From IMG/VR virus record IMGVR_UViG_3300009703_004110, positions 248,001-312,000 of that record: a stretch of DNA of 64,000 nucleotides; one strand, given 5' to 3'. Each line of letters opens with the position of its first letter. Positions within the stretch are counted from its first letter, which is position 1. The position numbers and the translations under genes were made by a program. Positions 3,178 through 63,116 of the stretch are shown one piece after another. Below the pieces are notes generated by a model. That model did no database searches. It worked only from the letters and a program-made list of their open reading frames with translations, and was not told the DNA's origin.

Positions 3178-3184
3178 TTCATCC

Positions 3185-26020: not shown

Positions 26021-26586
26021 TTTATTTTCCCTCTTTCTATTGTTGTATATGAAATAATTTTTTTCATATGTTGAATCCACTCATCAAATGAATGAGAGCG
26101 CTTCATATAGTTGCAAGTTTTGCAACATATTTTAATATTGCTTAATACATACCCAACATCATTATTGGGTCTGTCAAGCCCTATTGTATCTATTTTTGAA
26201 CCACAATATTCGCATGGTTTTTGCCACAAAGATTTAAACTCAATAAAAGATATACCAAATTTATATCCACGTCTTTCAGCTTCGTTTTTATAAATAGTGT
26301 ATTTACTGACCGGCGAATATCTGTGCCTATCTTTGCACGGTTTACAGTTGGGGTGATACCCATCCTTTCTGCTTGCTAATTTGTGATATTCAGCAATCGG
26401 TTTTTTAACATTACAATGCCCACAAACTTTTTCTGTTATAGCGGGCTTTGCCTTTGTTTTCATTTCTGATTGAATTTTCTTTACGCAGTCCTTACATCTG
26501 GCCATCACACCCAATCGGCAAGTCTTGTTTTTATAAAACTCTGAAAGCTCTTTCACCTTACTACACTTAGTACATGTTTTCGTCAT
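26017..26586 (-). CDS. His-Me finger (HNH-like) homing endonuclease
   Basis: Repeated CxxC motifs; CEYCG...[10 protein letters not shown]...N...CC.TCN. Confidence 0.85.
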
Positions 26587-40884: not shown

Positions 40885-41190
40885 TCAACCCCAAGTTGCT
40901 GATACAAGATAATGTCCAGGTTCAAGGTGCCCCTTTTTAATCAAGGCCATTATCATCATATTTAAACTTACAGTTCCGTCAGAATAGTCCGTCATTTCGG
41001 TGACAGCTTCGTCTACCCACTTCTGACGTGATTTAATTATATCACTCGTACAATCGAACAGAGTTTCTCCGCCGCTATCGTGCCCAGCAATTTCATCTTC
41101 ATATGGTTCACATGTGAATCCGAAATGCTCCTTGGCTAATGATAGAATATCTTCTATATCCGTCCAATATACTTCTAGTCTCTTTATCAT
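40885..41190 (-). CDS. Hypothetical protein
   Basis: ATGA overlap with the RF gene. Confidence 0.6.
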   Translation of the reverse strand: MIKRLEVYWTDIEDILSLAKEHFGFTCEPYEDEIAGHDSGGETLFDCTSDIIKSRQKWVDEAVTEMTDYSDGTVSLNMMIMALIKKGHLEPGHYLVSATWG

Positions 41191-41873
41191 TTGTTTAATT
41201 CCCCAAGCTGGCCTCTAGAGTAAGCTTTGTACGTAATAGTTTTATCATTGATGTGATCATAAACTTTGCCAGCTTGAACTCTAATGGTTCTAATCTTTTC
41301 TTCGCCTCTGCCTCCAGAACCAACTTGTTGCTTACGCTTACTTCTTCTGTTCAAATAAGCCTCTCTGTCAGCTATGGCTTGTAACTTTGCAGAAATAACG
41401 CTGAGTGCATTTTCTTTATTCTGCTTTTGACTACGTTCAGATTCGCATCGCACAATAATCCCTGTTGGCTTATGCTTAATCTGAACAGCAGAGTCAGTCA
41501 CATTTCTATGTTGTCCGCCAGCACCAGAACCTCGGGCAGTCTTTATTTCAAGCTCATCCTTTCTAAAGGATAATTGTTCAGCCTTTTGAGATTCTGGCAG
41601 CACGGCGACAGTAATCGTAGAGGTGTGCACCCTTCCTTTACGTTCAGTAGGCGGGACCCTTTGCCACCTTATAATTCCCGATTCTTTCTGAAATAACTTA
41701 CCGGCATTTTTTCCGATAACTTTAAATATAATAATTCCATCCCTACATGTAATCAAATCTATATCTAACTTATTTCTTTTTGCATACTTACAATAAATTT
41801 TGAATTGAATCTTCACTAGATCTTTTGAATCTGATCCGCCTTCGCCCGCTCTTATTTCTATAATTAATGTCAT
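41187..41873 (-). CDS. prfA: Class I peptide chain release factor, RF1-like, lacking domain 1
   Basis: EIRAGEGG, QRVPPTE (PxT), RVHTST, GAGGQHRN. Confidence 0.9.
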   Translation of the reverse strand: MTLIIEIRAGEGGSDSKDLVKIQFKIYCKYAKRNKLDIDLITCRDGIIIFKVIGKNAGKLFQKESGIIRWQRVPPTERKGRVHTSTITVAVLPESQKAEQLSFRKDELEIKTARGSGAGGQHRNVTDSAVQIKHKPTGIIVRCESERSQKQNKENALSVISAKLQAIADREAYLNRRSKRKQQVGSGGRGEEKIRTIRVQAGKVYDHINDKTITYKAYSRGQLGELNK

Positions 41874-43097: not shown

Positions 43098-43694
43098 TTA
43101 TTGCTTGACGTTTTTATTTTGCCTGCAAAAAGTTGATGTTTGGCTATGGCAATTCGGACAAAGCAATCTTAAGTTACTTATTTCATTATTGTTTGGTATT
43201 CCATCTATATGGTCTAATTGCAATACTAATTTTTTATTCTGCCATTTGCTAATATTACACACTGAGCAGTTATATTTTAAAAGACCTGCCGTTAAAAGCC
43301 TTTTCTTCAAAGAGTCGCGACTTTTGTATGGGCTATCTTTGACCAAAATTTCACTTAAATTATACTTATATGTTATACGATTCTTTTGCCAACTACCAAA
43401 ATGCGATATATCGATATTTAGCTCGCTAATATAGCGATCTATTGTTTGAAAATTTCCAGACGCATTAGGGCTTAGTCCCAATTTTTTAATTACATCAGTT
43501 TTAGTTACAGATGCTTTCACTGCTTCGATTAAGTCATCATCAGTCCATGTTCTTTGCGCCCCACGCTTATCTCCGCTCATTCCGTATTTTTTCAAATAAA
43601 ATCTAACCGTAGAGTATCCCGCCCCCATTTTTTCGGCAATTTCTTTTATAGTCTTACATTCTTTCCTATATTTCATCAAAGCTTGCTTGTCCAT
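43098..43694 (-). CDS. HNH homing endonuclease
   Basis: HTH-like N-terminus; LQLDHIDG..NNN.ISNLRLLCPNCHSQT. Confidence 0.9.
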   Translation of the reverse strand: MDKQALMKYRKECKTIKEIAEKMGAGYSTVRFYLKKYGMSGDKRGAQRTWTDDDLIEAVKASVTKTDVIKKLGLSPNASGNFQTIDRYISELNIDISHFGSWQKNRITYKYNLSEILVKDSPYKSRDSLKKRLLTAGLLKYNCSVCNISKWQNKKLVLQLDHIDGIPNNNEISNLRLLCPNCHSQTSTFCRQNKNVKQ

Positions 43695-43739
43695 ATTAGC
43701 TCTCCCTATATTAGCTAATATATTAATAGACGGGATATA

Positions 43740-43815
43740 TGGTGGACTGAGACGGAATCGAACCGCCGACGCGAGGATCTTCAATCCTCCGCTCTACCGA
43801 CTGAGCTATCAATCC
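43740..43815 (-). tRNA. tRNA-Phe(GAA)
   Basis: Canonical, CCA. Confidence 0.95.
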
Positions 43816-47706: not shown

Positions 47707-49176
47707 TTAGCCGCTAGTTCTCATGGTTGGAAATAAGATTACATCCCGGATAGAGGTTCGATTTGTTAAAATCATAACCAGCCGGTCAATACCGATACCT
47801 TCGCCAGCCGTTGGTGGCATACCGAAAGTTAAAGCTCTAACGTAATCTTCATCAAAATACATTGCCTCATCATCGCCGGCATTCTTCCTCACTACCTGAG
47901 CAGCAAAGCGATCAGCTTGATCCATCGGATCATTAAGTTCGGAAAAGGCATTTGCAATTTCCATACCAGCAACAAATAACTCAAACCTATCGGTCACCCG
48001 TGGGTCGTCATCATTACGTCTAGCAAGCGGGCTGATCTCTGTTGGATAGTGAGTTACAAACGTTGGATTAATCAACTGATCTTCAATGTATGTATCAAAG
48101 ATTAATGTAAACATTTCTCCAATAGAGTCTGGTAGCTCACTCTCATAAGCTGGATTAGCTGACTGCCAAAATTCGTGCAAGTTTTGAATCGAATAAGGAT
48201 CGCCCTCAACACCAACCTTTGTTAGCAACTCATCAAACCTGGCTTCGCCCCATTGGCCGAAGTCAATTTCAGTATCACCATACGGTCTAACTAAATTACT
48301 ATAGCCAAACAAATCTCCAACCAACTCAGTAATCATATTCTGAGTCATCTTCATTAGATCACGATAAGTAGAGTGAGCCGCATAGAATTCAACAGTAGTG
48401 AATTCAGGATTGTGCTTGGTGGAAATCCCCTCATTTCTGAAATTCTTTCCAATCTCATATACACGATCTAGCCCGCCAACAATTAATCTCTTAAGATAAA
48501 GCTCTGGAGCAATTCTCATAAAGAGATCCATATCTAAAGCATTATGGTGCGTTACGAATGGCTTAGCTGACGCTCCGCCAGGAATCGGCTGTAAGGTCGG
48601 GGTCTCTACCTCTAAAAAACCTCGATCTTCTAAGTGCCGACGTACTCCGCTAACAATCTTAGATCTTGTAATAAAGACTTGCCTACTGTCATCATTGACT
48701 GCCATGTCTAAGTAACGCATTCGAGAACGTGTCTCTTGGTTAGTTAGACCGACATGCCTATCTGGCATACCCGCAATATTCTTGGAATACAAATGAATCT
48801 CTGCTACATTTACAGTCAACTCACCCATGCGCGTGCGCATCATGGTTCCAGCGAACCAGACCCAATCACCAATATCCATCGCCTTCCATTCGGCAAACTG
48901 TTCTGCACCAACAGTCTTCTTTGATACCATAATCTGAATGGCAGCATCTTGACCATTTACGCGGCCAAACCCAAGCTTACCAAGCTCATTCTTAAATCGC
49001 AATCTTCCAGCGGATGATACGGTCATATCATTCATGGCCGCAATAGAGTGCTCACTATAAGCAGTAACAATGCTCTCAACGCTGGTGTCAAATGGTATAT
49101 CATTCGGATATGGCTCGATTCCTTCTGCCCTGAGGCGTAGCGCCTTGTCTCTCATTTCTTCATTAAACTGAAACAT
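47707..49176 (-). CDS. lysS: Lysyl-tRNA synthetase (class II)
   Basis: GGASAKPF.THHN, RIAPELYLKRL, FRNEG, HNPEF, GMPPTAGEGIGIDRL. Confidence 0.97.
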   Translation of the reverse strand: MFQFNEEMRDKALRLRAEGIEPYPNDIPFDTSVESIVTAYSEHSIAAMNDMTVSSAGRLRFKNELGKLGFGRVNGQDAAIQIMVSKKTVGAEQFAEWKAMDIGDWVWFAGTMMRTRMGELTVNVAEIHLYSKNIAGMPDRHVGLTNQETRSRMRYLDMAVNDDSRQVFITRSKIVSGVRRHLEDRGFLEVETPTLQPIPGGASAKPFVTHHNALDMDLFMRIAPELYLKRLIVGGLDRVYEIGKNFRNEGISTKHNPEFTTVEFYAAHSTYRDLMKMTQNMITELVGDLFGYSNLVRPYGDTEIDFGQWGEARFDELLTKVGVEGDPYSIQNLHEFWQSANPAYESELPDSIGEMFTLIFDTYIEDQLINPTFVTHYPTEISPLARRNDDDPRVTDRFELFVAGMEIANAFSELNDPMDQADRFAAQVVRKNAGDDEAMYFDEDYVRALTFGMPPTAGEGIGIDRLVMILTNRTSIRDVILFPTMRTSG

Positions 49177-50812: not shown

Positions 50813-52483
50813 TTACTCGTATGCATTCATGCTGCCACTTTCAATCTTGGCTGCTTCGACTTCCAACTTCTCTCGCATCAGTGGGCTTAGAATATCACAC
50901 TTAGCAGGACGCTTTGCCCAATCAGCATTAAGACGCTCACGCATTTGATCGAAGTCTTCGAAGACATAATCAACAGGTCCACAGTCCCAGATGACCTCAA
51001 GCAAGTCTGTCTCCATACGATAATCTTCCCAGCTTGTTCCTGTTGCAGGATATACCTTCAACTCAGAACCAACGGAATTAACGATGGTAAGTCCGGGCAG
51101 GCTCATCTTGCTAAGGTCACGACTCGGCTTCTTCATAACATCACGAACCGTTCCGTCCGCATACTCGATACGACAAAGCTTGGTTGCACACTTTAGTGTG
51201 TCACGGTTCTGCTTCTGTAGCAAACCACCGCCCATACCAAAGGCGACATTCTGAGCACTATAACCAGCATTCAAAACGGCACGGAGAATAGCGGCAAGGA
51301 TGCGAGCATCAATACCGTCTCCCTGGATTACAGCCGCTCCGTTAAGAACCTTGTAACCCTTGCTGTTAACTGTCACACCGAATGCTGCCTCGCAAGCTTC
51401 CAGTCCATCTAGAACACATCTAACAGGATCGCCAGAGTCAGGACGTACTACGAATAGAATTCCCTGCTTCTGCGCCAGTGGTGCAATCTGAGGAAGAATC
51501 GTCCAAAGGAACGATGCTCGATCAGGATTATTATAGTTATAAGAATCAGCAACACAGCTAAGGATTGCTCCCTCAGGAGTGATTCCAATAAGATGCTCAA
51601 CTGCGGCCATTTCCTTAGGCCAAGCTGTCATCACACTGTGCTCAGATGCAAGTACCGATTCACCAACCGGACGACCTTCGTTCCACTTAGTTGCAAGCCA
51701 ACCAGCAGTCATGGTATCAGTACCTTCAAAACTTAGAAGGTGACCGGCACCAGTAGTCATCGCAGTTTCTGCGCTCGATACTCCACGCGAACCAAAATCA
51801 TGCAAACGGCTGGGAAGCAAGAAGTCAAGCTCTGCTTCAACAGACTCATCAAATGCGGCACGAATCAGACGCCAAACATGACGGCTCTTAGTAGCAGTAA
51901 CGGACGGGCTCCACAGACGCATCAACGCAGTCTCAAGCCAAGTCACCAGATACACAAACTCATCGTCTGTTAGATTATCTGTGCTTGCCGTAATTGTAAA
52001 GCAAGGAACATTCGGATAAACCACTGTTCCATCACGTAGCGCCTTAATCTTGATGGGAATATATCCACCATTATCTACGACCTTCTGCCATAGATGCTTG
52101 GGCCAACTCATCGGAGTCTTTGCGACACCATGAGTCTTTAGATAGGTCTCTGCTTCATCTACTTCAAACTGCTCAATTCGATGAGAGATAACAGTTTCAA
52201 ATAGGTAGCGCATACCAAAGAAAACGATTCGCTCGTCCTCTGCTGTGAGTGGGCCACGGAATGTAAAGTACGCAGTCATTGACTTTGCGTCAGGATACAT
52301 CTGCCAGTGTCCAGTCTTATAAGTATCCGTGTCCAGTAGGAACGGGATACGTCGAGGGTCGCTTTTTAGAATGTCAATCTTAAGCTGTTCCATCAGATCC
52401 GCTAAGGCATCTGATCCTGCTGCGCCGTGTATCTGTAAGATATTACATTCTGCTTCTCTAATAATATCATTTATATTTCTCAT
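50813..52483 (-). CDS. nadV: Nicotinamide phosphoribosyltransferase
   Basis: TDTYK..H..MYP, LHDFGSRG, ASEHS, VRPDSGDP, IQGDG, FGMGGGLLQ. Confidence 0.95.
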   Translation of the reverse strand: MRNINDIIREAECNILQIHGAAGSDALADLMEQLKIDILKSDPRRIPFLLDTDTYKTGHWQMYPDAKSMTAYFTFRGPLTAEDERIVFFGMRYLFETVISHRIEQFEVDEAETYLKTHGVAKTPMSWPKHLWQKVVDNGGYIPIKIKALRDGTVVYPNVPCFTITASTDNLTDDEFVYLVTWLETALMRLWSPSVTATKSRHVWRLIRAAFDESVEAELDFLLPSRLHDFGSRGVSSAETAMTTGAGHLLSFEGTDTMTAGWLATKWNEGRPVGESVLASEHSVMTAWPKEMAAVEHLIGITPEGAILSCVADSYNYNNPDRASFLWTILPQIAPLAQKQGILFVVRPDSGDPVRCVLDGLEACEAAFGVTVNSKGYKVLNGAAVIQGDGIDARILAAILRAVLNAGYSAQNVAFGMGGGLLQKQNRDTLKCATKLCRIEYADGTVRDVMKKPSRDLSKMSLPGLTIVNSVGSELKVYPATGTSWEDYRMETDLLEVIWDCGPVDYVFEDFDQMRERLNADWAKRPAKCDILSPLMREKLEVEAAKIESGSMNAYE

Positions 52484-52747: not shown

Positions 52748-53881
52748 CTAGTATGCCATGCTTTCGATAATATCAAGGTGATCCTCAAACAAAAGGTGTG
52801 GCATATCATTAATGACTTCGCTTAGAGCGAACCATTGTACTCTGGTTACTTCCCTCTCAAATCCACGCTCGGGCTTAAGTTGGGGAATCTTAAACCATGA
52901 AGGAACATCCCATCGAAACGCATGTGTGAGCACACGCCCACGCTGGCTTCTCTTTGGGTGATCGAAACGGTCTTCCTTAGTCAACCATTCGTCACGTACC
53001 TTCATTCGTGTCTCTTCCTGTAGCTCGCGCTTTGCGCCAGCAACAGCCGTCTCATCCGCCTCAAGGAATCCTCCTGGCAGAGCCCACAGTCCCTTGCCGG
53101 GATGTGAGCGACGACGAACAAGTAGAATGTTACCCTGATGGATAACTACATTATCTGTCGTCATAAACTGTAGCTTATGACCAGCGGGGCTAATTTGCCT
53201 AATCCTTTCTCCGGACTCATCAATGATCCAGAGATACTGATCTTTTGGCAACCCTTCTAATGGGTCATACTTGCTTCGATACTTTAGAATATGCTTATGT
53301 CCAGCGGCCATGTTCTTGCCGTGCTCTGTGCCTATCCATTGGGACAGGAGCTCTGAAGTAGATGAGGCAACAAGGCTCATCCAGTCATTGGACTCGTTCA
53401 TATAAAGTCCGTGCATAATTTCTGCATATCGGCTTTCAATATCTTCAATAACCTCTACCTCAGAATTCCATCGAGGGAAGCTATTTAAATAGTCAGTTTC
53501 TTCATGCCTTCTATCTACACCATACAAAGTGATATTGCAATCACTTAGTCGGTGATCTGGCCCATAGGCTGACTTAATTCCTTCTGAGACAGCCTCTTGA
53601 ACCTTAGTAAGAAAACGTGTCTTATTATACCAGTAATCACGAGCCCTTCTGTATTCGACCTTGTGATAATCTAAACCGTAATCTGCAAGGGCCTCATCAA
53701 TCATGTTTGATCGTTCTGCCGCTACAAAGGGGTCTCTGGAGTCACGGGCTGTATCAGATGAGCCAAGGATAACTACTACAATGTTATTATCACTAATGGC
53801 CGGGCTGAATAGCCGCTCAATTTGTTCTAGGGTCACAGGCTGAAATCGCCCAATGATTACGCCTACATTTGGATTCTGCAT
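52748..53881 (-). CDS. NMN adenylyltransferase-like/Nudix bifunctional protein (NadM-Nudix), HxGH motif degenerate
   Basis: IGRFQP, GS...RDPF..AER; GLWALPGGF...RELQEET; FEDH. Confidence 0.88.
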   Translation of the reverse strand: MQNPNVGVIIGRFQPVTLEQIERLFSPAISDNNIVVVILGSSDTARDSRDPFVAAERSNMIDEALADYGLDYHKVEYRRARDYWYNKTRFLTKVQEAVSEGIKSAYGPDHRLSDCNITLYGVDRRHEETDYLNSFPRWNSEVEVIEDIESRYAEIMHGLYMNESNDWMSLVASSTSELLSQWIGTEHGKNMAAGHKHILKYRSKYDPLEGLPKDQYLWIIDESGERIRQISPAGHKLQFMTTDNVVIHQGNILLVRRRSHPGKGLWALPGGFLEADETAVAGAKRELQEETRMKVRDEWLTKEDRFDHPKRSQRGRVLTHAFRWDVPSWFKIPQLKPERGFEREVTRVQWFALSEVINDMPHLLFEDHLDIIESMAY

Positions 53882-54217: not shown

Positions 54218-54526
54218 TTACTTTTTTGCGGAAAGAATATCTAAATAAAATAATATCTCCAAGTCATCGTCGCCAAGACCTGACATGAATTCTTCCCCAT
54301 CGATTGTAGTCGCACAGCCTGTGTGATTAATTTTAACAAAAGTGACTTTGCCGTGATCTGATACAAAACCAACCTTATCAGAATCCATAATAACAACATT
54401 CATACGCCTTGGCGACGTAACTCTAACTTTTCGACTATTGATTAACGAAATATAAACGAGCATGGCCCGGCTCTTTTTCTTAGCACAATATTCTATAAAA
54501 GAAAGCTTCCGCCCAATCTTTATCAT
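54218..54526 (-). CDS. Hypothetical protein, C-terminal-tag family
   Basis: Ends LEILFYLDILSAKK. Confidence 0.55.
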   Translation of the reverse strand: MIKIGRKLSFIEYCAKKKSRAMLVYISLINSRKVRVTSPRRMNVVIMDSDKVGFVSDHGKVTFVKINHTGCATTIDGEEFMSGLGDDDLEILFYLDILSAKK

Positions 54527-54984
54527 AGCAAAGGAAGGTGGCCGGTAATCCTATCAACATCTTCAACAAAACCTGGGCCAATTGCAACGGCTGTCTTTGT
54601 CGGAACACCATCAAACTCAGTGAATCCAGCGTCGGTGATTAAAGAGCACGGAAGATTAGCGGCCTTAGCCGCCTCATATAACTCCACTAACTCTTCTTCA
54701 CTATCAACACTAACACAGATCTTAGCAAACCTTCCGGCAATCCAAGCACAGACACCCTGTAGCTTTCTGATATAACTCTTAAGCCCCCTTGGACCGAAAT
54801 GTAAATCTACTACCCCGTAAATCCCGCCTTCTTCCCAAAGACCTATATCACCACTACCCCAATCAATTAGATCTAATAGTACAGCGCAAGAAGCATGAGC
54901 GCCTTGCGACACCATCTTACCTTTCCTCATATTAAGATCTTTTCTTATTATGATTACCTGCTTTGCTTTATAATTTTTGGTCAT
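54523..54984 (-). CDS. pth2: Peptidyl-tRNA hydrolase type 2
   Basis: KQVIIIRKDLNMRKGKMVSQGAHA, DAGFTE, TAVAIGP, ITGHLPLL. Confidence 0.93.
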   Translation of the reverse strand: MTKNYKAKQVIIIRKDLNMRKGKMVSQGAHASCAVLLDLIDWGSGDIGLWEEGGIYGVVDLHFGPRGLKSYIRKLQGVCAWIAGRFAKICVSVDSEEELVELYEAAKAANLPCSLITDAGFTEFDGVPTKTAVAIGPGFVEDVDRITGHLPLL

Positions 54985-55559
54985 ATATTCCTCGGTGGCT
55001 TTACGGCCTCAACATTTAAACTAACCAAAGTTCCTTTGTGCCATATTTCATCTGGCAGCTCATTACCATCCTCATCATGCCTTGGAACATAATCCCTGCT
55101 CCAGTCTCTTACATTAGCATGTGAAGTTGTAAATGGATCATATCGTTTGATATTGACAAATCCCATTTCAGACAAATCTTTTTGAAGCTGGTTGAAATCC
55201 CATCCCCAACAGTGATAGTCGTAAGGATTTCTTTGGCCACCGAACATGGTGCCTCTTATCTCAGATAGATCACCAGTCTCATTGTAGTGACGAATCAGCC
55301 CTTCAAAATCAGGAACCGAAATCCTTAGCATTCCGCCCGGTGCTAACAAATCAAGTAAGGTTGATAGAACATCTTTGTACTCGTGTCGTGAGAAGTGTTC
55401 TAAAACATGGCAAGCATAGATGTAATCAACACTGTTCTTTTCAAACTTTGTATGCAAATCTTTTATATCACATATCAAATCAGTAGCGTCAGTTTCATAA
55501 ATATCTATGTTTACAAAGCCTTCTATCTTTTTTGGTCCGCATCCTAAATGTAATTTCAT
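54981..55559 (-). CDS. Class I SAM-dependent methyltransferase
   Basis: LHLGCG, HVLEH, GGMLRISVPDF, SLNVEA. Confidence 0.88.
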   Translation of the reverse strand: MKLHLGCGPKKIEGFVNIDIYETDATDLICDIKDLHTKFEKNSVDYIYACHVLEHFSRHEYKDVLSTLLDLLAPGGMLRISVPDFEGLIRHYNETGDLSEIRGTMFGGQRNPYDYHCWGWDFNQLQKDLSEMGFVNIKRYDPFTTSHANVRDWSRDYVPRHDEDGNELPDEIWHKGTLVSLNVEAVKPPRNI

Positions 55560-55575
55560 TTTCCCTTCAATTTTA

Positions 55576-55651
55576 TGGCACGCTGTAAGGGATTCGAACC
55601 CTTGACGCGGAGGTCTAGAATCTCCCGCTCTGACCGCTGAGCTAACAGCGC
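55576..55651 (-). tRNA. Amber suppressor tRNA (anticodon CTA)
   Basis: 76-nt cloverleaf; GGAGA-TTCTAGA-CCTCC (A31/C39 mismatch), G73, CCA. Confidence 0.8.
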
Positions 55652-55730
55652 AAAATGAAATAGAAAGCTTAGGCCGAAGCCTTTGTGTCCTCTCTATTTC
55701 ATTACCCTTTGAATTTTGTTTTTAGCTTGC

Positions 55731-56105
55731 TTACTGAAGGCTTGCCGCATACAGCGCTGTCTTGGCTGAGTAGTTGCTGTTTGAAAGTGCCCAACTTCTC
55801 ATCCAATCCCAATCACCCATCACATAGGCAGAGAATTGAGTTTCAGAAAGGTCAATCTCTGTGTCTACAGACATTTCCTGCATTCGGATAATTCTATCGA
55901 AGGTTTTGACATGTGATTGCAGTTCTGCTAAGCTAAATTGCATATTAACTTTTTCGCCATTCTCTAGTTGGCGCAGCTTCTTCATTAAAATTCTCTTGGA
56001 CTCTCGACGATAGCCCTCCATCACCTCTTCATACATTTCGATGTGCTCTTCTCGGTTAGTTCTTAGCGCCTCAAGAACATCTTTTCTTAATACTGTTACA
56101 TTCAT
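55731..56105 (-). CDS. Conserved phage hypothetical protein
   Basis: NREEH...F..YV...W.W motif. Confidence 0.7.
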   Translation of the reverse strand: MNVTVLRKDVLEALRTNREEHIEMYEEVMEGYRRESKRILMKKLRQLENGEKVNMQFSLAELQSHVKTFDRIIRMQEMSVDTEIDLSETQFSAYVMGDWDWMRSWALSNSNYSAKTALYAASLQ

Positions 56106-56132
56106 TTCGTCACGGCTTCCCCTTATATTTCC

Positions 56133-56426
56133 TCACTTTGCATATACCTCGTTCAGAGGCCAGAATCCATATCCTGTACGGATCCCTTTGATTAATCTTC
56201 TTAAGATTGCAGCTTCCTCATTAGAAACTACACGAGACCAAAAGTGTCTTAAGAAATCTTCTCTATCTTCATAGTCAAGATATTGGTTTGAACCAAATCC
56301 ATAATGAAGTGGCTGATTAGATGGAATTTTGCTTTGTGCGTTATTCCACTCTTCTTCCTCCATTAATGCTACTCCGCCAAGATTAAACTCATCAGCCCAA
56401 TTATCATTAAAGTAAATTAACAACAA
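56133..56426 (-). CDS. Hypothetical protein
   Basis: DNWADEF, FGSNQ. Confidence 0.65.
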   Translation of the reverse strand: MLLIYFNDNWADEFNLGGVALMEEEEWNNAQSKIPSNQPLHYGFGSNQYLDYEDREDFLRHFWSRVVSNEEAAILRRLIKGIRTGYGFWPLNEVYAK

Positions 56427-56427
56427 T

Positions 56428-56655
56428 TCAATCTCCTTTGTTATTCAAAAATGAAATGAACACTCCAGAACGTTCATCCCACCATGTAAATTCAACATAA
56501 ATACTTGAAATAACATTTGCTGCACTACTTTTTTCAGTTACTCTCAGCCAAACTCCACCGGGCAAATTCATGGCTGATGTAACAATGTCACCACTACCAT
56601 AGCCACCATAAGATTTATCTACTCTTAACCACTTGCCCATTATGGGGTCGCTCAT
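56428..56655 (-). CDS. Hypothetical protein
   Basis: Small ORF. Confidence 0.55.
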   Translation of the reverse strand: MSDPIMGKWLRVDKSYGGYGSGDIVTSAMNLPGGVWLRVTEKSSAANVISSIYVEFTWWDERSGVFISFLNNKGD

Positions 56656-56658
56656 AAT

Positions 56659-57597
56659 TTAACCATTAAAAAGATGTTTACAAATAGCTCGACCTCTGCG
56701 ATCGATCTGCTTCCACTTAATCTTAAAACTATCAGATTCTCTTCCGCCAAATATCTTGGCATTACTATGAACCTCAGATAAGCCTGCAAGTAACAAAGTA
56801 ATTGCAACGATCTTATTTCTACAGAACTCTTCAGCTTCTGATGCTTTGATAGTATGAATCTCCATATCTCTCAGAATAAGCTCTCCAATAATTGGGTCGC
56901 CATTAATTTTATTCCAAGTCTGATATGATATCTTTGCGTGATCAGGAAAATGAACACGGCCTTCTTCATCCATTTCTTTACAGTAAGGCTTGCCACAATC
57001 ATGCATGGTAGCGTACTGCTGAATGATATCCGATGATAACAAACTATTTTTGATATCCTCTCTGTACCCTTCAAACCAAGAAGGCAGTTTCCAGTCTAGT
57101 CGCAACTCTTGTCCGTCCAGATAATGAAGCAAATCTTCATAATGCTTCCAGACGGATAGTCCGTGCTCGTAAATTGTTTGCCCTTTGGTCTGCTCTATAT
57201 GCTTCATATCTCGTACCACTTTTTGGTACGGCGTCTCTGGCTGACTAAATTCTTTTAGTGCCAGCGGAAGCGAGCCACAGAATCTTCGACCTTTATCTCC
57301 AGGCTCAATTGCAAGTGCAGTAATCTGATTGTTAATGTCGGGCTCTCGAAAAACAGAAAATCTAATCTTCTTCTTTTCGGCTCGTGCAATCAGCTTGATT
57401 AGCTCGTCTTCATCCTTCGCAGATAGAATTGCGATATGATTAGAAGACTGATACCATTCCGATTCGATCTCAGAATGCTCTGAAATGAATTCACGAAATG
57501 CGTGAAGTGCCTGTGCAATTTGTGTGCCAGGATCTAAATCCTTGCGAGTAATAATATATAGCTTGTCAGTTGGACAGAGGCCCTAAGTGTGTTCCAT
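56659..57597 (-). CDS. Pth2-like domain plus HD domain fusion, in-frame TAG at codon 5 (312 aa if read through)
   Basis: SD AGGAGAGG; ATG GAA CAC ACT TAG; KLYIITRKDL.PG.QIAQALHA...FREPDI...TALAI...LPLA; MHDCGKP...HFPDH. Confidence 0.85.
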
Positions 57598-57606
57598 TTC
57601 CCTCTC

Positions 57607-58014
57607 CTATAAGGTCTGTTGTATGCTATCCATATCTTCTATCTCTATTTCATCAAAGCCAAAGTCGGCTTGAAATGTGCGGACGCTAGTGCTATCTGTT
57701 TCATCAGAATGAATTGAGTGCCAATACTGCCCATCATATTCTGCGTTATTTACAAGATGCACATGATGCACATGATAGACTCTTCCATTAATTTCTTTAC
57801 TTAACCAAGTAGATAAAAGACGCTTATTCTTTCCCGATTCTCCAGCTTCGCCAGTAATATACCAGCCATGCCCAAATAATGAATCGGTGTTTCCAATGCC
57901 CCACTCATCAGAAGTTAAGTTATTATAAAGATGATTCATTCTATCTCTGTAGAAATCCCATTCTCCAATCCATAGAACATTATAACCAACATCTGAATAA
58001 GTATTCCTGCCCAT
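57607..58014 (-). CDS. Hypothetical protein
   Basis: SD GGGAG. Confidence 0.6.
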   Translation of the reverse strand: MGRNTYSDVGYNVLWIGEWDFYRDRMNHLYNNLTSDEWGIGNTDSLFGHGWYITGEAGESGKNKRLLSTWLSKEINGRVYHVHHVHLVNNAEYDGQYWHSIHSDETDSTSVRTFQADFGFDEIEIEDMDSIQQTL

Positions 58015-58066
58015 CTTAATTCTCCCATGTGATATGCAGGCCGGTAGGCGGCAAAATCTTTATAGT

Positions 58067-58297
58067 CTATTCACTCTCGTCAGCTTTCTCTTTCACTAAT
58101 TTAATATAAGCAGTATAAGCAACTTGACTATATGCCATGTTAATTGAGGCGGACATTACTACCAGTGATATACCAAAGATTGCTTCTTCATCTGTGCCAT
58201 GCATCATATCATAAATGATATAAGCAAATTCCTCTGGTGTGTTTTGTTCAATTAATTTCTTACAAAACCGGGCTGGGTCGATTGACTCTAATAACAT
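58067..58297 (-). CDS. Hypothetical protein
   Basis: SD GAGG. Confidence 0.55.
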   Translation of the reverse strand: MLLESIDPARFCKKLIEQNTPEEFAYIIYDMMHGTDEEAIFGISLVVMSASINMAYSQVAYTAYIKLVKEKADESE

Positions 58298-58313
58298 GGT
58301 TTCCTCGTAATTA

Positions 58314-58390
58314 TGGAGGCGACGGCAGGATTCGAACCTGCGAATAGACGAGTTGCAGTCGCCTCCCTTAAGCCTCTTGGGTACGTCGCC
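58314..58390 (-). tRNA. tRNA-Cys(GCA)
   Basis: Loop CTGCAAC, U73, CCA. Confidence 0.92.
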
Positions 58391-58420
58391 ATTATGGGGA
58401 GATTTCTCTCCCCAATTAGA

Positions 58421-58783
58421 TCAGTTCAAAAGTTCCTTCACACGTTCCAACGTCCAGTCCTTCCTTTCGGAATAACCTACGTGAGACTTAATGATGCTCA
58501 AAACCTCTTCCGCGTCAGGCGCCTCCTTGCAACTTGCTTCAATCTTACGATAAGCCATACCCCTAATGAGGCCATTGGCTACGTTAAGACTGCGAGCATA
58601 AGATGCCCGGTCAACACGAAGTGATGCTGCCGCATACGTAGTGTTGCCCCAATGCTTAGTCTCCTGAGAGTCTATCATCTTCTGCGCTGTTTGAAATAAA
58701 GTTCTGGCTCTTGCCTTCACCATACGGCGATGGTAAGCGGTTGACTTAAGTTCTGCTCTAAGTAGTTCACGATACATATTCAT
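58421..58783 (-). CDS. Basic helical hypothetical protein downstream of the amber-RGPP leader
   Basis: SD AAGGA; ARSLNVANGLIRGMAYRKIE. Confidence 0.75.
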   Translation of the reverse strand: MNMYRELLRAELKSTAYHRRMVKARARTLFQTAQKMIDSQETKHWGNTTYAAASLRVDRASYARSLNVANGLIRGMAYRKIEASCKEAPDAEEVLSIIKSHVGYSERKDWTLERVKELLN

Positions 58784-58799
58784 TTTGTTTTATCCTTTT

Positions 58800-58919
58800 T
58801 TAGTTTTTTTGAATTGCTGCCATCACAGCCGACTTTGTGTGGCACGATTTAAACGCTGTTATATCAACTCCAAAACTAAAAGGTGGACCTCTTGCATAAG
58901 TCTAACAATATTCTCGCAT
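58800..58919 (-). promoter_or_regulatory. Leader peptide MREYC-amber-TYARGPP (stop-readthrough/arrest attenuator)
   Basis: SD GGAG; TAG at 58904-58902; RGPP at 58892-58881; anti-SD pairing with 58794-58816. Confidence 0.75.
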
Positions 58920-58937
58920 AACTATCTCCATATTAAC

Positions 58938-58966
58938 AATATACCGAAGTGTACATTGTCGTTCAA
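58938..58966 (-). promoter_or_regulatory. Sigma70-type promoter
   Basis: TTGAAC-N17-TATATT with an AT-rich upstream element. Confidence 0.65.
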
Positions 58967-58984: not shown

Positions 58985-59752
58985 TTACAGAAACCTACTA
59001 ACGTACTCTCTATCTTCTTTAAAGAGAGGAATCTCCCAGTCGATAGTCCATCTATTACGTTTGGCTATCACAGTTTCTTTAGCCCCATGCTTCATAAAAG
59101 TCACAGGTTCTTCAAAGCTTTTACGAGTTACAGTAAATCCTTTTTGAAAATGACTTGGGACGTCTTCCCACGGAGTACCATTATTTCTCAACATTTCTTT
59201 CATCTGCAAAACAGTTCTACCATTACATTCTTTATGAGAAAAATAATGCCTTGCATACATTGAAACAGAATTGCGCAAAGCGTCTTGCTGTCTCCATACA
59301 AAAGCATTAACAACTTCATGCTCAGGAAGATTCCAGAACCTAGAATCAAATTTTGGTCTAGAGTCTGCAAGGCTTGGATCGCTCATAACTAATGCTGCAT
59401 AAAACTCAACTGCTACAGCAGAAGCAATAACGCTATTCATCTTTCTGGTTTTATAACCAAAATAAGGCTGAGTCTGCTCTGATTCAGTATCAGTTATTAG
59501 AAAGGATATTTCATCAGACTGGACGTAAGCCATCTTACAACCTTGGATTTCTTGGCACCCAACAATGGCACCTACAGCCATAGCCAAAACAAATTTTTCA
59601 TTCCAAGGAGAATTAGCTTCTTTCTTTAGACTCTTAGTAAATTTACTAAAATTCTTTCCATCTACTCGGCCAATAACAGGAACGCCACTAACTAGCTTAA
59701 AGTTAGTTTGCTTCTCGTAACCCTTCATCCTATTTTCTAATGTATCAAACAT
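58985..59752 (-). CDS. tRNA(His) guanylyltransferase Thg1-like protein
   Basis: RMK.YE, RVDGKNFSKFT, YVQSDEIS, FDSR, WRQQDA.RNS. Confidence 0.93.
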   Translation of the reverse strand: MFDTLENRMKGYEKQTNFKLVSGVPVIGRVDGKNFSKFTKSLKKEANSPWNEKFVLAMAVGAIVGCQEIQGCKMAYVQSDEISFLITDTESEQTQPYFGYKTRKMNSVIASAVAVEFYAALVMSDPSLADSRPKFDSRFWNLPEHEVVNAFVWRQQDALRNSVSMYARHYFSHKECNGRTVLQMKEMLRNNGTPWEDVPSHFQKGFTVTRKSFEEPVTFMKHGAKETVIAKRNRWTIDWEIPLFKEDREYVSRFL

Positions 59753-60182
59753 CGGGAGCCTCTCCGCTCTTAGTTATCTGCTCAGCTGCCGCAATACCCG
59801 CCAGCTTATCAACCACTTCGTTATATTCATTTCCAGCATGACCCTTAACCCATTTAATATCAAGGTTTGGACAGTTTTCTAATTTTTCTCTTATTGTTTT
59901 AACACGCTCGGTATTCTTCCTAGCAATCCAGTTCTTAGTAAAAAGTCCCACACAGTAACTTGAGTCGGTATATATAACGGCCTCTTCCCAATTCCTGCCT
60001 TCTCTTATTAGATAATCTATGGCATACTCTATTCCGCTCATTTCAGCAACATTATTTGTCTCGACTCCAATGTGGCCGGCACAATAGTGTATTACCTTAT
60101 CATCTTCTAAAACTATAACGCCATATCCTGCTGGACCTGGATTGGTTGGCTTGCATGAGCCATCCGTATATATTGAGATCAT
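59745..60182 (-). CDS. rnhA: Ribonuclease HI
   Basis: YTDGSC..NPGP, TNNVAE, TDSSY, WVKGHAG...NE.VD.LA. Confidence 0.94.
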   Translation of the reverse strand: MISIYTDGSCKPTNPGPAGYGVIVLEDDKVIHYCAGHIGVETNNVAEMSGIEYAIDYLIREGRNWEEAVIYTDSSYCVGLFTKNWIARKNTERVKTIREKLENCPNLDIKWVKGHAGNEYNEVVDKLAGIAAAEQITKSGEAPDV

Positions 60183-60202: not shown

Positions 60203-60814
60203 TTATGCTAGCTCCTCGTAAAGAGCCTCGTCATTTCTGCATCTTTTACGTAGTTCAGTATACCAAGCTTGATTCTTAACTTTGAACATTAAGACGCCAG
60301 GCTTCTTTGGATGCTTGGCTTTGCATACTACGCCTTCGAATGTCATCCCCGGTAACGTACCGTTTCTAACTTGCTCTAAGAACGTGGCATTCGGCTTACC
60401 TCTATAGAGCATAGGTGCTATATCTAAATGTCCAAACAGCTTTAAGAATTCTTTGGGCGGAACCATTCCGCTCTTAAATAGATTGGCATCAAACAAGACT
60501 ATTTGATGCTCTTCGGTATTGTCGTGCCATCCAAAAGATGAACTCTCTCCAAAGAATTCAAAGAACAATACGACTTTATCGAGCCGTTGTTTTCTCATGA
60601 TCTTGGAAACATCATCTTCGTACTTATTTCGGATAAGACCTATGGCTTCACCAAAGGTTTCGTCGTCTGCACCAAGCATTCTCTTGCGAGTGCCAAACTT
60701 ATAGAAGCCACGCTTCTTTGACCATTCGGCTCTGATGTTGGAACCATCTAATTTGTCAAAGGCATAAACATCAAGATTAGATATCTCGCCTGTTATTGAT
60801 GGATACTGTTTCAT
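60203..60814 (-). CDS. RNA-ligase-like nucleotidyltransferase
   Basis: KLDGSN, EFFG, LFD, EGVVCK, FKVK. Confidence 0.75.
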   Translation of the reverse strand: MKQYPSITGEISNLDVYAFDKLDGSNIRAEWSKKRGFYKFGTRKRMLGADDETFGEAIGLIRNKYEDDVSKIMRKQRLDKVVLFFEFFGESSSFGWHDNTEEHQIVLFDANLFKSGMVPPKEFLKLFGHLDIAPMLYRGKPNATFLEQVRNGTLPGMTFEGVVCKAKHPKKPGVLMFKVKNQAWYTELRKRCRNDEALYEELA

Positions 60815-61931: not shown

Positions 61932-63116
61932 CTATACCTCACTTACAATATTCATTCCAAGAAAAGTCATGCCTAGTGCCAAGTCATCTAACATTGGCTG
62001 AAACAAAGCTTGTCCCTCTGGATTATTCTGAATTTTAACATCCATATAAAGTCCGTTAATTTTCTTTGCTAACTTAACCAGAGCCGTTAGTAAAGTCTTT
62101 GGATTAAGATCACTTTGTGATTTAATCAAAGCATAGATAAGCTCCGGAGACTTTAGCGCACCAGACTCTGGCTTTAGCCCGGCACTCTGTAAGCGTGCCA
62201 AAGTATAGCTCAAGTATAGGCCAGAAGATTGTTTCAGAGATTTAATCTGGTCCAAATCTAATTTCTTAGTACTCTTTGGTGAGCTATTCAAAATGAAGCC
62301 AACTAATACATTATACGCCAAATCAGGGTTTGGAAACTCGTCAATCAGTAGATCATAAACCTCTTGGGCCATGACGGTGTTGCCCTCCCTGCTTGACATC
62401 TTCTTCCCTTTAGCGATTACTAGTCCAAGCGGAACATGCGTAATTTCGCCCTCGGGAAATAGCTGTGCCAACTTCTTAAAGTGCGGGCCTTGCTCCGAAC
62501 CCGTTAGATATAACTTACTCTCACCATTCCAGGCTTGAGCTAGAGCGACGTCTTGCCAAAAATAGCTAGTACTTCCATCGCTTTTAATTCCAACAACATA
62601 CTCGTCGTCAGCTATAAAGCCTTTAGTACCTTCATACTTACCATTTCCGCTTACTAAAAGAGAATCGTCATTCAATATCATATCTGATGCAAAGAAGACT
62701 GCACCATTAATATAGTAGTCAGACCACTTAAGCCATTCTTCTAGTTTGCTTAGGGCGTCTTCTTTGGAAACATCACCATCTAATGTGTCCCCAAGGATGG
62801 CCACAAAGTCAAGGCCAATCCCCATGTTTTCAAATGCTTTGGCAATGACAAGGTTTGATAGGTGACCAATATGAAGGTGCTTATTTAGATTCGGACTAAA
62901 CCCATCAACTATCGAATAAGCCTTAGGCTCTACAAACAGATCGTGTAGACTTATACTCTCTGGAATATTAATGTTAGTAAACCTTCCAGACTTAACCAAA
63001 GTTAAGCTATGATAGTCTGCCCACTTACTGATCTCTTCTGATGGTTTGCCAAATACACATAAAGCAAAGTCCATCATCGGCGGCGTTGTAGCTACCTTTC
63101 CAATATCGATTTTCAT
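61932..63116 (-). CDS. argS: Compact arginyl-tRNA synthetase
   Basis: FSPNLNKHLHIGH, KSDG...Y...D, KMSSREG, YLSYT.ARL.S. Confidence 0.88.
   Translation of the reverse strand: MKIDIGKVATTPPMMDFALCVFGKPSEEISKWADYHSLTLVKSGRFTNINIPESISLHDLFVEPKAYSIVDGFSPNLNKHLHIGHLSNLVIAKAFENMGIGLDFVAILGDTLDGDVSKEDALSKLEEWLKWSDYYINGAVFFASDMILNDDSLLVSGNGKYEGTKGFIADDEYVVGIKSDGSTSYFWQDVALAQAWNGESKLYLTGSEQGPHFKKLAQLFPEGEITHVPLGLVIAKGKKMSSREGNTVMAQEVYDLLIDEFPNPDLAYNVLVGFILNSSPKSTKKLDLDQIKSLKQSSGLYLSYTLARLQSAGLKPESGALKSPELIYALIKSQSDLNPKTLLTALVKLAKKINGLYMDVKIQNNPEGQALFQPMLDDLALGMTFLGMNIVSEV

Follow-up and report, generated by a model that had tools for sequence, protein, structure and literature searches.

A gene module putatively gated by a suppressor tRNA in jumbo phages

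We analysed a 64,000-nucleotide stretch of a giant marine phage (the window; positions 248,001 to 312,000 of IMG/VR record IMGVR_UViG_3300009703_004110), in which a block of genes on the minus strand combines early in-frame amber codons with an amber-reading tRNA. The block begins with a sigma-70-like promoter at 58966..58938, consisting of TTGAAC, a 17-nt spacer and TATATT. A consensus scan of the window found six such sites against 12 expected, so the site alone is not above chance. However, both hexamers are kept in an alignment of five relatives, and its promoter function is predicted from sequence only. Downstream lies a short leader ORF (58919..58881) preceded by GGAG. Its ATG is at 58919-58917 and is followed by R-E-Y-C, a TAG as codon 6 (58904-58902), T-Y-A and R-G-P-P (58892-58881). 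If the TAG is read through, the frame runs on to a TAA at 58802-58800. The pattern TAG-N9-R-(G/A)-P-P occurs once in the window against 0.02 expected. The leader is followed by a gene that we call X (58783..58421), encoding a 120-residue, all-helical protein without any Pfam, PDB or fold match.

The next gene of interest (57609..56659) encodes a fusion of a Pth2-like and an HD domain. It has a Shine-Dalgarno sequence (SD; AGGAGAGGG, 57609-57601), an ATG at 57597-57595, and the codons for M-E-H-T followed by a TAG as codon 5 (57585-57583). An open frame of 307 codons then continues in frame 0 to a TAA at 56659. The first ATG, GTG or TTG after the TAG is 121 codons downstream, leaving no usable start in between. 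We refer to this layout, an early in-frame stop just after a normal start, as gated. The Pth2-like domain spans about residues 7-110 and scored 39.9 bits against Pfam PTH2 (cut-off 23), while the HD domain spans about residues 120-305. An AF2 model of the protein had a pLDDT of 94.4. In this model the N-terminal domain has the Pth2 fold (TM 0.75-0.78), and the C-terminal domain is closest to the class II tRNA nucleotidyltransferase complexes 3wfq and 3wfr. The H...HD...H...H...D residues are invariant, leaving an intact metal site, although no nucleotidyltransferase head domain is present. The Pth2-like domain is divergent, and the position aligning with the lysine of the Pth2 G-K motif is T, Y or Q.

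Three further features complete the picture. A 76-nt tRNA with anticodon CUA and an encoded CCA lies at 55651..55576, as predicted by ARAGORN and supported by the Rfam tRNA model (56.9 bits). It is syntenic in five related loci (L085, L086, L087, L099 and L100; L numbers denote related loci). A canonical, ungated Pth2 of 153 residues lies at 54984..54523 (Pfam PTH2 E-value 2e-30; also NCBIfam Pth2). Its orthologs were found in the same five loci, and it belongs only to the window's own lineage. An RF1-like gene lies at 41873..41187, with PPT (PxT) and GGQ motifs but without release factor domain 1. It matched Pfam PCRF and RF-1, and NCBIfam prfA at 203 bits, which is below the cut-off of that model. 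The RF1-like protein is a possible antagonist of the suppressor, but no RF1-like gene was found within the 6-10 kb on either side of any related locus. TAG is otherwise an ordinary terminator in the window, where 15 of 86 minus-strand ORFs end in TAG. No other gene in the 64 kb has the layout of SD, ATG, a few codons, TAG and a long ORF. Every element listed in the initial annotation was thus present, and we consider its observation confirmed.

We next determined whether the early stop is conserved in homologs, a comparison that the initial annotation had itself proposed as a check. It was conserved in about 90 related loci, mostly on uncultured phage contigs but also in cultured phages of seven host genera. 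These cultured phages are pT24, XacN1, RAS14, RsoM2USA, GAP32, fHe-Yen9-04 and Arash. The stop was found whether the Pth2-like and HD domains are fused in either order or encoded by separate genes, in which case each gene has its own early TAG. Among 63 distinct Pth2-like N-termini, 49 have an ATG, up to seven further codons and then TAG, another four are HD-Pth2 fusions gated at the fusion start, and one uses TGA. Among 70 distinct HD N-termini, 46 have an early TAG, 12 lie in gated Pth2-HD fusions and three use TGA. When clustered at 70% identity, 29 of 36 clusters are TAG-gated and one is TGA-gated. Median domain identity among gated genes is 38% and the minimum is 18%, yet the codon remains TAG, which makes up only 11% of ordinary terminators in the same loci. 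Close relatives at 74-78% identity change the flanking codons but keep TAG at codon 5, with MEHT, MENS and MEKS preceding it. The gate is not obligatory, since about 10-15% of homologs have ordinary starts. These include L059, L076/L080, Myrna gp84, the HD gene of Arash and a copy on a Pseudomonas megaplasmid.

In lineages that use an SD, it sits 6-9 nt before the ATG of the mini-ORF. The base after the gating TAG is A in 75, G in 13, C in 7 and T in 0 of 95 cases. A purine at this position is reported to favour amber suppression (Bossi 1983; Miller and Albertini 1983). The module genes rarely end in TAG themselves (1 of 60 and 3 of 68). In GAP32 and fHe-Yen9-04 the HD gene carries the TAG at about codon 47, downstream of a conserved His-containing motif, so restarting after the stop cannot give a whole enzyme.

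The gated genes are linked to suppressor tRNAs. A tRNA(CUA) lies within 6 kb of the module in 38 of 81 IMG/VR loci, where it is often the only tRNA. In the other 43 loci no suppressor tRNA lies within 6 kb, although it may be elsewhere in those genomes. The suppressor tRNAs are not one homologous lineage. In the complete pT24 genome the fusion gene is the only gated gene and there is one tRNA(CUA). The stop codon also co-varies with the anticodon. In L054 both genes are gated by TGA (MES-TGA and MTWS-TGA), and this locus carries two tRNA(UCA). Its relatives L081 and L063 use TAG, and L081 carries tRNA(CUA).

The leader upstream of X is conserved as well, with the form M-x3-4-TAG-x3-R-(G/A/S)-P-P. 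It was found in L087, L099, L100, L101 and L102 with synonymous third-position changes in the GGN CCN CCN codons after the TAG. Homologs of X at 54-63% identity were found in five relatives. The same architecture with RAPP or RSPP occurs in the more distant loci L020, L023, L025-27 and L036. In these loci and in L071, distant homologs of X (HMM E-values 1e-34 to 1e-9) lie directly upstream of the HD gene, which is amber-gated except in L071. RGPP and RAPP are established arrest cores (PMC12992588). Minimum free energy folds of all six leaders of the window lineage and of four RAPP/RSPP leaders (L020, L023, L025 and L036) predicted a long-range stem (58889..58792 in the window). In the window its 5' arm covers the Gly-Pro-Pro codons and the following U-rich run (about 58889-58872), which pairs with the SD region of X (about 58807-58792). 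In all of these folds the arm starts at or just after the Pro-Pro codons, but in L087 the Pro-Pro codons themselves pair elsewhere. Cognate arm pairs gave the best total duplex energy of all 720 permutations.

With fairly high confidence, we suggest that the block is a small translational regulon (X, HD and Pth2-like) whose trans-acting key is the phage's own suppressor tRNA. In this view, a ribosome starting on the Pth2-like/HD gene meets UAG at codon 5. If RF1 wins, a tetrapeptide is released and no enzyme is made, whereas if tRNA(CUA) wins the whole enzyme is made. Enzyme output would therefore follow the ratio of suppressor to RF1 activity, and separate Pth2-like and HD genes in relatives would each behave likewise. 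In the leader of X, only a ribosome that has read through the UAG would reach R-G-P-P at codons 10-13. There it would stall and cover the Pro-Pro codons and the bases after them, which otherwise pair with the SD of X, so that X could then be translated. Sequence comparison shows the stops, their conservation and their purine-rich 3' context, the linkage to the suppressor tRNA, the co-variation of stop and anticodon, selection at the peptide level downstream of the leader TAG, and the co-varying stem between the anti-SD and the SD. That suppression occurs and how efficiently, that RGPP stalls in this context, and what the products do are inferred, without experimental evidence of readthrough, of the amino acid inserted or of stalling. 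Since many phage genes in the window end in TAG and would be extended by an efficient suppressor, suppression must be partial, context-dependent or timed.

The interpretation in the initial annotation is therefore partly supported. Its core idea, that UAG readthrough by the phage's own tRNA(CUA) acts as a switch for this block including the RGPP leader, is strongly supported by the comparisons above. Three of its proposals are not established: a role in peptidyl-tRNA recycling, given that the gated domain is a divergent Pth2 fold and the canonical Pth2 is ungated and lineage-specific; low RF1 activity as the trigger; and a reset by the RF1-like gene. Our analysis adds that the HD domain is gated in its own right, that a third conserved protein, X, is the predicted target of the leader, and that the module is widespread in jumbo phages.

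Both enzyme domains resemble proteins that work on the tRNA 3' end, namely Pth2 and the HD domain of CCA/A-adding enzymes. Known arrest or recoding sensors usually control a factor that acts on the sensed quantity. We therefore think it most likely that X, HD and Pth2-like act on the 3' end or aminoacyl state of tRNA, probably including tRNA(CUA) itself, which would close a feedback loop of either sign on UAG decoding. This inference rests on fold resemblance and analogy only, and X has no recognisable relatives. A possible but less favoured alternative is that the proteins serve in clean-up. Suppression would make ribosomes run past TAG terminators and produce stalled complexes, peptidyl-tRNA and damaged tRNA ends, which proteins induced in proportion to suppression would recycle. 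Alternatively, they may be tRNA-attacking or anti-defence enzymes kept off until the phage's own tRNA set is working, as an interlock or timer. Consistent with such roles, the module sits in tRNA arrays, and in the window it lies next to Thg1, RNA ligase, RNase H and the canonical Pth2. L054 has a tmRNA beside the suppressors, and jumbo-phage PTH2 has been proposed to act in ribosome rescue after tRNA cleavage (PMC7824862). Conversely, a canonical, ungated Pth2 already exists in the window's lineage, and the gated domain lacks the residue aligning with the G-K lysine. The self-contained appearance of the module in pT24 fits a loop on the tRNA itself at least as well, and on present evidence these roles are not separated.

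A less likely variant of our model is that the gate reads RF1 rather than tRNA supply. The suppressor would be roughly constant, and expression would rise when host RF1 is depleted or inactivated during infection, with RF1 activity rising again once the phage RF1-like protein appears. UAG is read only by RF1, and release on mini-ORFs of 2-8 codons is slow, which would make an early UAG sensitive to RF1 level. An RF1-like protein is also the opposite of the RF2 carried by TAG-recoded phages, so it fits regulation better than recoding. However, such a gene was absent from the 6-10 kb on either side of all related loci, and the conserved genomic partner of the gated genes is the tRNA, whose anticodon the stop codon tracks. 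The complete pT24 annotation names no release factor, although most of its genes are unnamed.

Termination followed by reinitiation, without a role for the tRNA, is very unlikely. The codon after the stop is very often ATT, ATA, ATC or GTN, which can serve as weak starts. However, any stop codon would serve for reinitiation, yet 29 of 30 gated clusters use TAG, and the one TGA lineage carries tRNA(UCA). The window has GGC after the TAG, and others have AAC, ACC, CTG or TTA, which are not starts. The HD stops of GAP32 and fHe-Yen9-04 lie inside the domain, and the conserved leader peptide spans both sides of its TAG at a fixed spacing. Ordinary reassignment of TAG (genetic code 15) is equally improbable, although a tRNA(CUA) is present and recoding is common in large phages. 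TAG ends many ORFs in the window and no other gene there is interrupted, a count that leaves out the other 356 kb of this phage's 420-kb contig. The complete pT24 genome has only two same-frame TAG junctions against 17 for TAA, and the authors of the XacN1 study found nothing by reading through its 18 TAG-ended genes. Each gated gene has a single TAG at a fixed, start-proximal place across 18-38% identity, unlike the scattered codons of recoded genes, and the phage carries an RF1-type factor. A pseudogene or an assembly or sequencing error is refuted by conservation of the stop in TARA and Logan relatives, 80 IMG/VR loci and seven cultured phages, and by an otherwise intact ORF under selection with 29 invariant columns.

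We found no description of such a module in the literature searched, but several known systems share parts of it. In stop-codon-recoded phages (codes 15 and 4; Ivanova 2014, Borges 2022, Peters 2022), a phage tRNA(CUA) or tRNA(UCA) also reads a stop inside phage genes, which has been proposed to time expression. Here TAG stays an ordinary terminator, only two or three specific genes are affected, each with one stop, and the tRNA is physically linked to them. In prfB autoregulation, an early in-frame UGA likewise senses decoding or termination activity and sets the yield of a translation factor. Here no frameshift is involved, the competitor of the release factor is a dedicated suppressor tRNA, and the regulated proteins are not release factors. 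The arrest peptides ApdA, ApdP and ApcA and SecM/MifM-type leaders share a short upstream ORF ending in R-(A/G)-P-P and a downstream SD held in a stem that a stalled ribosome would open. The present leader has only 13 codons, no signal or membrane segment and no link to protein localisation genes, and the amber codon three codons upstream would make nonsense suppression, rather than secretion force, its input. The bldA tRNA(Leu-UAA) of Streptomyces is a specialised tRNA that activates a small set of genes carrying its codon, TTA. It reads a rare sense codon in a cell, whereas here a phage tRNA would read a stop codon at the start of its targets in competition with RF1. Archaeal and eukaryotic Pth2 and the HD domain of class II CCA/A-adding enzymes share the folds described above, but the two domains are fused or adjacent in phages only, where no activity is known. 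Synthetic circuits have the same design, with TAG near the start of a target gene in a 'leak dampener' feed-forward loop (Ho et al. 2021, PMC7969014) or inside a leader peptide (Liu et al. 2011, via PMC6412442), plus a suppressor tRNA as the second input. The phage module would be a natural, evolutionarily old counterpart of these engineered circuits. In this giant marine phage and in dozens of distant giant phages, these genes appear to be made only when the amber-reading tRNA works, which would give the puzzling suppressor tRNAs of standard-code phages their first identified targets.

We first examined the block of genes around the early amber codon within the 64-kb window, which belongs to a marine phage contig of about 420 kb. 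All genes of the block are on the minus strand. Read 5' to 3' on that strand, the block begins with a promoter-like TTGAAC-17-TATATT at 58966..58938, followed by a GGAG SD and a short ORF, M-R-E-Y-C-TAG-T-Y-A-R-G-P-P, with the TAG at 58904-58902. This leader is followed by a 120-aa gene, here called X, at 58421..58783, by tRNA-Cys and two small ORFs, and by a strong SD that precedes ATG GAA CAC ACT TAG, with the TAG at 57585-57583. After that TAG the frame stays open for 307 codons and contains no ATG, GTG or TTG for 121 codons. This ORF encodes a Pth2-like domain and an HD domain, and had been called as a 182-aa fragment. Further downstream lie tRNA(CUA) at 55576..55651 and an intact Pth2 at 54523..54984. 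An Rfam search returned only the two tRNAs. TAG is otherwise a normal terminator in the window, where 15 of 86 ORFs end in it, and no other gene in the 64 kb shows the same start-proximal stop. The observation made in the initial annotation, an amber-interrupted leader and an amber-interrupted Pth2-HD fusion beside a tRNA(CUA) and an intact Pth2, is thus confirmed as written.

Upstream of the block, at 41187..41873, is an RF1-like gene with PPT and GGQ motifs but no domain 1. Phages that have recoded TAG (code 15) carry a suppressor tRNA(CUA), often with a phage RF2; here the tRNA(CUA) is present and the release factor encoded is RF1-type (PPT motif; prfA 203 bits against prfB 149 bits), not RF2. 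No RF1-like gene was found as a conserved partner within the 6-10 kb examined on either side of the related loci. The window also carries 19 tRNAs, and the minus-strand genes at 24842-26080, 21040-23724, 17134-18501, 47707-49176 and 61932-63116 encode EF-Tu, a class I Ile/Val/Leu-type synthetase, a class II Asp/Asn/Lys-type synthetase, a full LysRS and an ArgRS-like fragment. Together with the RF1-like gene, this is an unusually complete translation kit. Two tRNA predictions, tRNA-Lys (CUU) at 10801-10892 (92 nt) and tRNA-Ala at 19083-19161 (79 nt), are over-long and may carry an insertion or intron. An HTH-HNH endonuclease ORF at 43098-43784 overlaps the end of a tRNA-Phe gene at 43740-43815 and is possibly a homing endonuclease in the tRNA array. 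A Thg1-like tRNA-His guanylyltransferase, an RNase H and an RNA ligase (58985-59752, 59745-60182 and 60203-60814) lie directly upstream of the leader, and their order is conserved in the related loci L087, L099 and L100, suggesting a tRNA repair neighbourhood. An NAD salvage pair, NAMPT and NMNAT-Nudix (50813-52483 and 52748-53881), is syntenic with the module in the relatives L085, L087 and L100. Elsewhere in the window are adjacent isocitrate lyase and malate synthase genes, which form a glyoxylate shunt (14278-15504 and 15518-17065), and a glutamine-synthetase-like gene (2152-3177).

We next determined whether the early amber codon is conserved in other phages, the comparison by which the initial annotation had proposed to test its reading. 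A near-identity DNA search of the block against GenBank phages found nothing. Tenacibaculum phage pT24, however, has a 39%-identical fusion gene that reads ATG AAA TAG and then continues in frame; its annotation starts 43 codons too late, and a tRNA(CUA) lies 2.5 kb away. We then fetched 80 IMG/VR loci with a homolog, located the two domains with tblastn and HMMs, and read the frame upstream of each. Three architectures occur: a Pth2-HD fusion, HD followed by Pth2-like either as adjacent genes or as an in-frame fusion, and two genes 0.3-1.3 kb apart. In all three, the first codons of each separately translated unit are ATG, up to about 10 more codons, then TAG. Of 63 distinct Pth2-like N-termini, 49 have an early TAG, 4 lie inside a gated fusion and 1 has an early TGA. 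Of 70 distinct HD N-termini, 46 have an early TAG, 12 lie inside a gated fusion and 3 have an early TGA. At 70% identity, 29 of 36 clusters are TAG-gated and 1 is TGA-gated. Gated domains share a median of 38% identity and as little as 18%, whereas TAG makes up 11% of the ordinary terminators of the same loci. Close relatives of the window (TARA and Logan contigs, 74-78% identity) read MENS-TAG and MEKS-TAG where the window reads MEHT-TAG, so that the neighbouring codons drift while the stop stays.

Cultured phages show the same layout. The gated start is MK-TAG in Xanthomonas XacN1 and in Stenotrophomonas RAS14, MKS-TAG and ML-TAG in Ralstonia RsoM2USA, MAQ-TAG in Cronobacter GAP32, MSH-TAG in Yersinia fHe-Yen9-04 and ML-TAG in Salmonella phage Arash. 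In GAP32 (locus L090, about 2992-3558) and fHe-Yen9-04 (locus L091) the HD gene has one in-frame TAG at about codon 47, inside the domain, and is annotated as two or three small hypothetical CDS; read through, it is a single intact HD protein. In Arash (locus L093, 2826-2978 and 3964-4038), gp84c, a 50-aa 'peptidyl-tRNA hydrolase', is the tail of a full Pth2-like ORF that starts ML-TAG, and the tRNA annotated as tRNA-Phe is read by ARAGORN as anticodon CUA. Gene callers therefore systematically truncate or miss two widespread phage gene families. The family itself is essentially confined to phages. Only two loci were found in one genome each of 185,579 species, so there is no bacterial operon context from which to borrow a function. 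One is a gated copy with tRNA(CUA) on a probable phage contig. The only clearly cellular-replicon homolog of the HD gene, on the 971-kb Pseudomonas fluorescens plasmid pMPCFBP13716 (L103), has no early stop and no suppressor tRNA nearby.

That the stop is read by the phage's own suppressor tRNA is inferred from four independent lines of evidence. First, a tRNA(CUA) lies within 6 kb in 38 of 81 loci and is often the only tRNA present. It is syntenic in the window's relatives, and it is present in GAP32, fHe-Yen9-04 and Arash, where the depositors call it tRNA-Phe. Second, stop codon and anticodon co-vary. In locus L054 both genes use TGA (MES-TGA and MTWS-TGA) and the locus carries two tRNA(UCA), whereas its relatives L081 and L063 use TAG, and L081 carries tRNA(CUA). 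A phage tmRNA gene (L054 2236-2580, tag ANNSVYALAA) lies next to the two tRNA(UCA) genes in this one lineage that gates with TGA. Third, the base after the gating TAG is A in 75, G in 13, C in 7 and T in 0 of 95 cases. A 3' purine is reported to be the classical context for efficient amber suppression (Bossi 1983; Miller and Albertini 1983). Where SDs are used, the SD sits before the mini-ORF ATG, not before the codon after the stop. Fourth, the module genes themselves end in TAA or TGA, with only 1 of 60 and 3 of 68 ending in TAG.

The suppressor tRNAs are not one lineage, and the window's tRNA(CUA) is unlike its own tRNA-Gln. A full GlnRS-type synthetase in L099 (8097-9677), or a fragment of one in L087 (9269-9511), sits between the gated Pth2-HD gene and tRNA(CUA), which hints, but does not show, that the suppressor is charged with glutamine. 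Inspection by eye of the ARAGORN sequence alone indicates that the window's tRNA(CUA) has G rather than A 3' of the anticodon (loop U-U-C-U-A-G-A), a G1-U72 pair and G73, while most other module suppressors have A at that loop position. The 'tRNA-Pyl' label given by ARAGORN only reflects the anticodon: no Pyl genes were seen, and the only PylS-like score is a weak class II hit of the phage LysRS.

After establishing that the early amber is conserved, we looked at the leader of gene X, which appears to be a second, different amber sensor. An exact-pattern scan and a protein scan of IMG/VR for further leader relatives returned only the window's own contig, and relatives were obtained from a protein collection instead. 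Five relatives of gene X (54-63% identity) keep the promoter hexamers and the SD upstream of X, as well as M-R-x-(Y/F)-(C/R)-TAG-x-x-x-R-G-P-P, in which the codons for R-G-P-P read AGA GG(T/G/C) CC(A/G/C) CC(T/C). These synonymous changes downstream of the TAG show that the peptide after the stop is under selection, and it must therefore be translated. After RGPP the leaders diverge in sequence and length. A pattern scan then found the same architecture in unrelated module loci, as MKYL-TAG-IRP-RAPP, MKHHF-TAG-VRS-RAPP-stop, MKDYL-TAG-IKT-RAPP-stop and MTHF-TAG-IRS-RSPP. Each lies upstream of a distant homolog of X (HMM E 1e-34 to 1e-13), and in those loci X sits immediately before the amber-gated HD gene. 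Overall, RGPP occurs in six window-lineage leaders, RAPP in the module loci L020, L023 and L025-27, and RSPP in L036.

RAPP and RGPP are established arrest cores that are refractory to EF-P (Fujiwara et al. 2025). In all ten leaders the minimum-energy fold contains a long-range stem, whose 5' arm starts at or just after the Pro-Pro codons and whose 3' arm lies at the SD of X; only in L087 do the PP codons themselves pair elsewhere. The arms differ between phages but stay complementary, and cognate arm pairs give the best total duplex energy of all 720 permutations. On this computational evidence, the stall site is placed so that it would unmask the SD of the downstream gene. A ribosome released at the UAG never reaches this arm, whereas a ribosome that has read through would stall at RGPP, sit on the arm and free the SD; the stalling and the unmasking are inferred. 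The leader has no signal sequence, and its distinctive input is the amber codon three codons upstream of the motif.

We then asked what the gated proteins are. The N-terminal domain of the fusion matches Pfam PTH2 (PF01981) with 39.9 bits against a cut-off of 23, and has PDB profile hits to 2zv3, 1rzw and 1wn2. The NCBIfam Pth2 equivalog model scores only 26 bits against a cut-off of 126, so the domain belongs to the superfamily but is not an equivalog. The AF2 model of the fusion is confident (pLDDT 94.4), and the predicted N-domain has the Pth2 alpha/beta fold, with Foldseek hits to 2zv3, 1q7s, 3erj and 1xty at TM (target) 0.71-0.78 and rmsd 2.2-2.8 A, and TM 0.75-0.78 to archaeal Pth2 and human Bit1. 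The catalytic residues of Pth2 are the Lys of the G-K motif and an acidic residue. In the HMM alignment to 2zv3 the G-K-G-K stretch aligns with 'agyq', and the window residues there are P-G-T-Q. The position aligned with the Lys is T, Y or Q, so that the Lys is not conserved, while a nearly invariant E-P-D lies at the acidic site.

The C-terminal domain has an intact H...HD...H...H...D site, in which H140, H194-D195, H211, H215 and D239 are invariant in 27 sequences, although its Pfam HD score of 17.2 bits is below the cut-off of 22. Its closest solved relatives are class II tRNA nucleotidyltransferases bound to tRNA, by profile (3wfp-3wfs, E 6e-5) and by fold (3wfq/3wfr). The two domains are fused in both orders or lie adjacent, so they work together. 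Both resemble proteins that act on the tRNA 3' end. X is all-helical, and Pfam, PDB profile searches, an AF2 model (pLDDT 70) and Foldseek detected no relatives.

Taken together, sequence comparison shows a conserved module in which up to three proteins depend on decoding of a stop codon that matches a linked suppressor tRNA. That the tRNA reads this stop, that the leader stalls ribosomes and what the products do are inferred. Most likely, and here we are fairly confident, the suppressor tRNA, in competition with RF1, is the trans-acting gate, and enzyme output and X output would both report suppression efficiency. The start-proximal position may be favourable in its own right, since release on very short nascent chains is slow and a failed attempt costs only a few codons. 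The interpretation in the initial annotation, that UAG readthrough acts as a switch for tRNA-recycling functions, is supported in part: readthrough by the phage's own tRNA(CUA) as the switch is strongly supported by the comparison, while peptidyl-tRNA recycling as the function, low RF1 activity as a trigger and the RF1-like gene as a reset are not established.

Arrest and recoding sensors such as SecM/SecA, MifM/YidC2 and prfB control a factor that acts on the sensed quantity. By that analogy, we favour a loop in which the products act on the 3' end or charging of tRNA(CUA) itself. Clean-up of suppression by-products, or an interlock for tRNA-directed enzymes, remain live alternatives. A more far-reaching possibility, which we hold only tentatively, is that the module is a self-referential homeostat or bistable switch for the meaning of UAG. 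In this view, the suppressor tRNA licenses the synthesis of X, HD and Pth2-like, which then act on that tRNA's own 3' end or aminoacyl state and so set how much UAG is read as sense during infection. Two different molecular sensors, a start-proximal stop codon and an amber-gated RGPP arrest peptide, would read that same signal. This would be a natural, ancient circuit that measures and controls nonsense suppression, and it would also explain why standard-code jumbo phages carry suppressor tRNAs.

Other explanations of the early stop fare less well. Reinitiation at a near-cognate codon is judged unlikely because of the stop-codon specificity, the TGA/tRNA(UCA) lineage, the non-start codons found after the stop, and the internal TAG in the GAP32 and fHe-Yen9-04 HD genes. 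Genome-wide recoding is rejected for pT24 and for the window, here within 64 kb of the about 420 kb of this phage. Only one gene of the window is interrupted, and the complete pT24 genome has one tRNA(CUA) and exactly one convincing gated gene. A prfB-type programmed frameshift does not apply, as the ORF continues in the same frame directly after the TAG and no shift is needed. A sequencing error or pseudogene is ruled out by conservation.

The individual parts are of known kinds: nonsense suppression, suppressor tRNAs in phages, RAPP/RGPP arrest leaders and SD-sequestering stems. What appears to be new is their arrangement. In the full-text literature searched, which excluded subscription-only papers, we found no description of early-amber gating of these genes or of an amber-gated arrest leader, and the main jumbo-phage comparative review lists PTH2 but never mentions suppressors. 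The nearest analogues are engineered, namely the amber 'leak dampener' feed-forward loop (PMC7969014) and TAG reportedly inserted in a leader peptide (Liu et al. 2011). The early-amber gate and the amber-to-arrest leader could supply compact orthogonal parts for synthetic biology, and the cultured phages Arash, GAP32 and fHe-Yen9-04 make the system directly testable in laboratory hosts.

Suppressor tRNAs are common in large phages that do not use an alternative code, and they have lacked an identified purpose. The XacN1 authors searched for targets by reading through its 18 TAG-ended genes and found none. They could not have found the HD-Pth2 gene, which in fact starts ATG-AAA-TAG, because the mini-ORF is not annotated. 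The module also reveals what appears to be a natural sensor of nonsense suppression built from an arrest peptide, and it points to an uncharacterised two-domain enzyme that probably acts on tRNA 3' ends. Our results would give the suppressor tRNAs of standard-code phages conserved, dedicated targets, and thereby a function.
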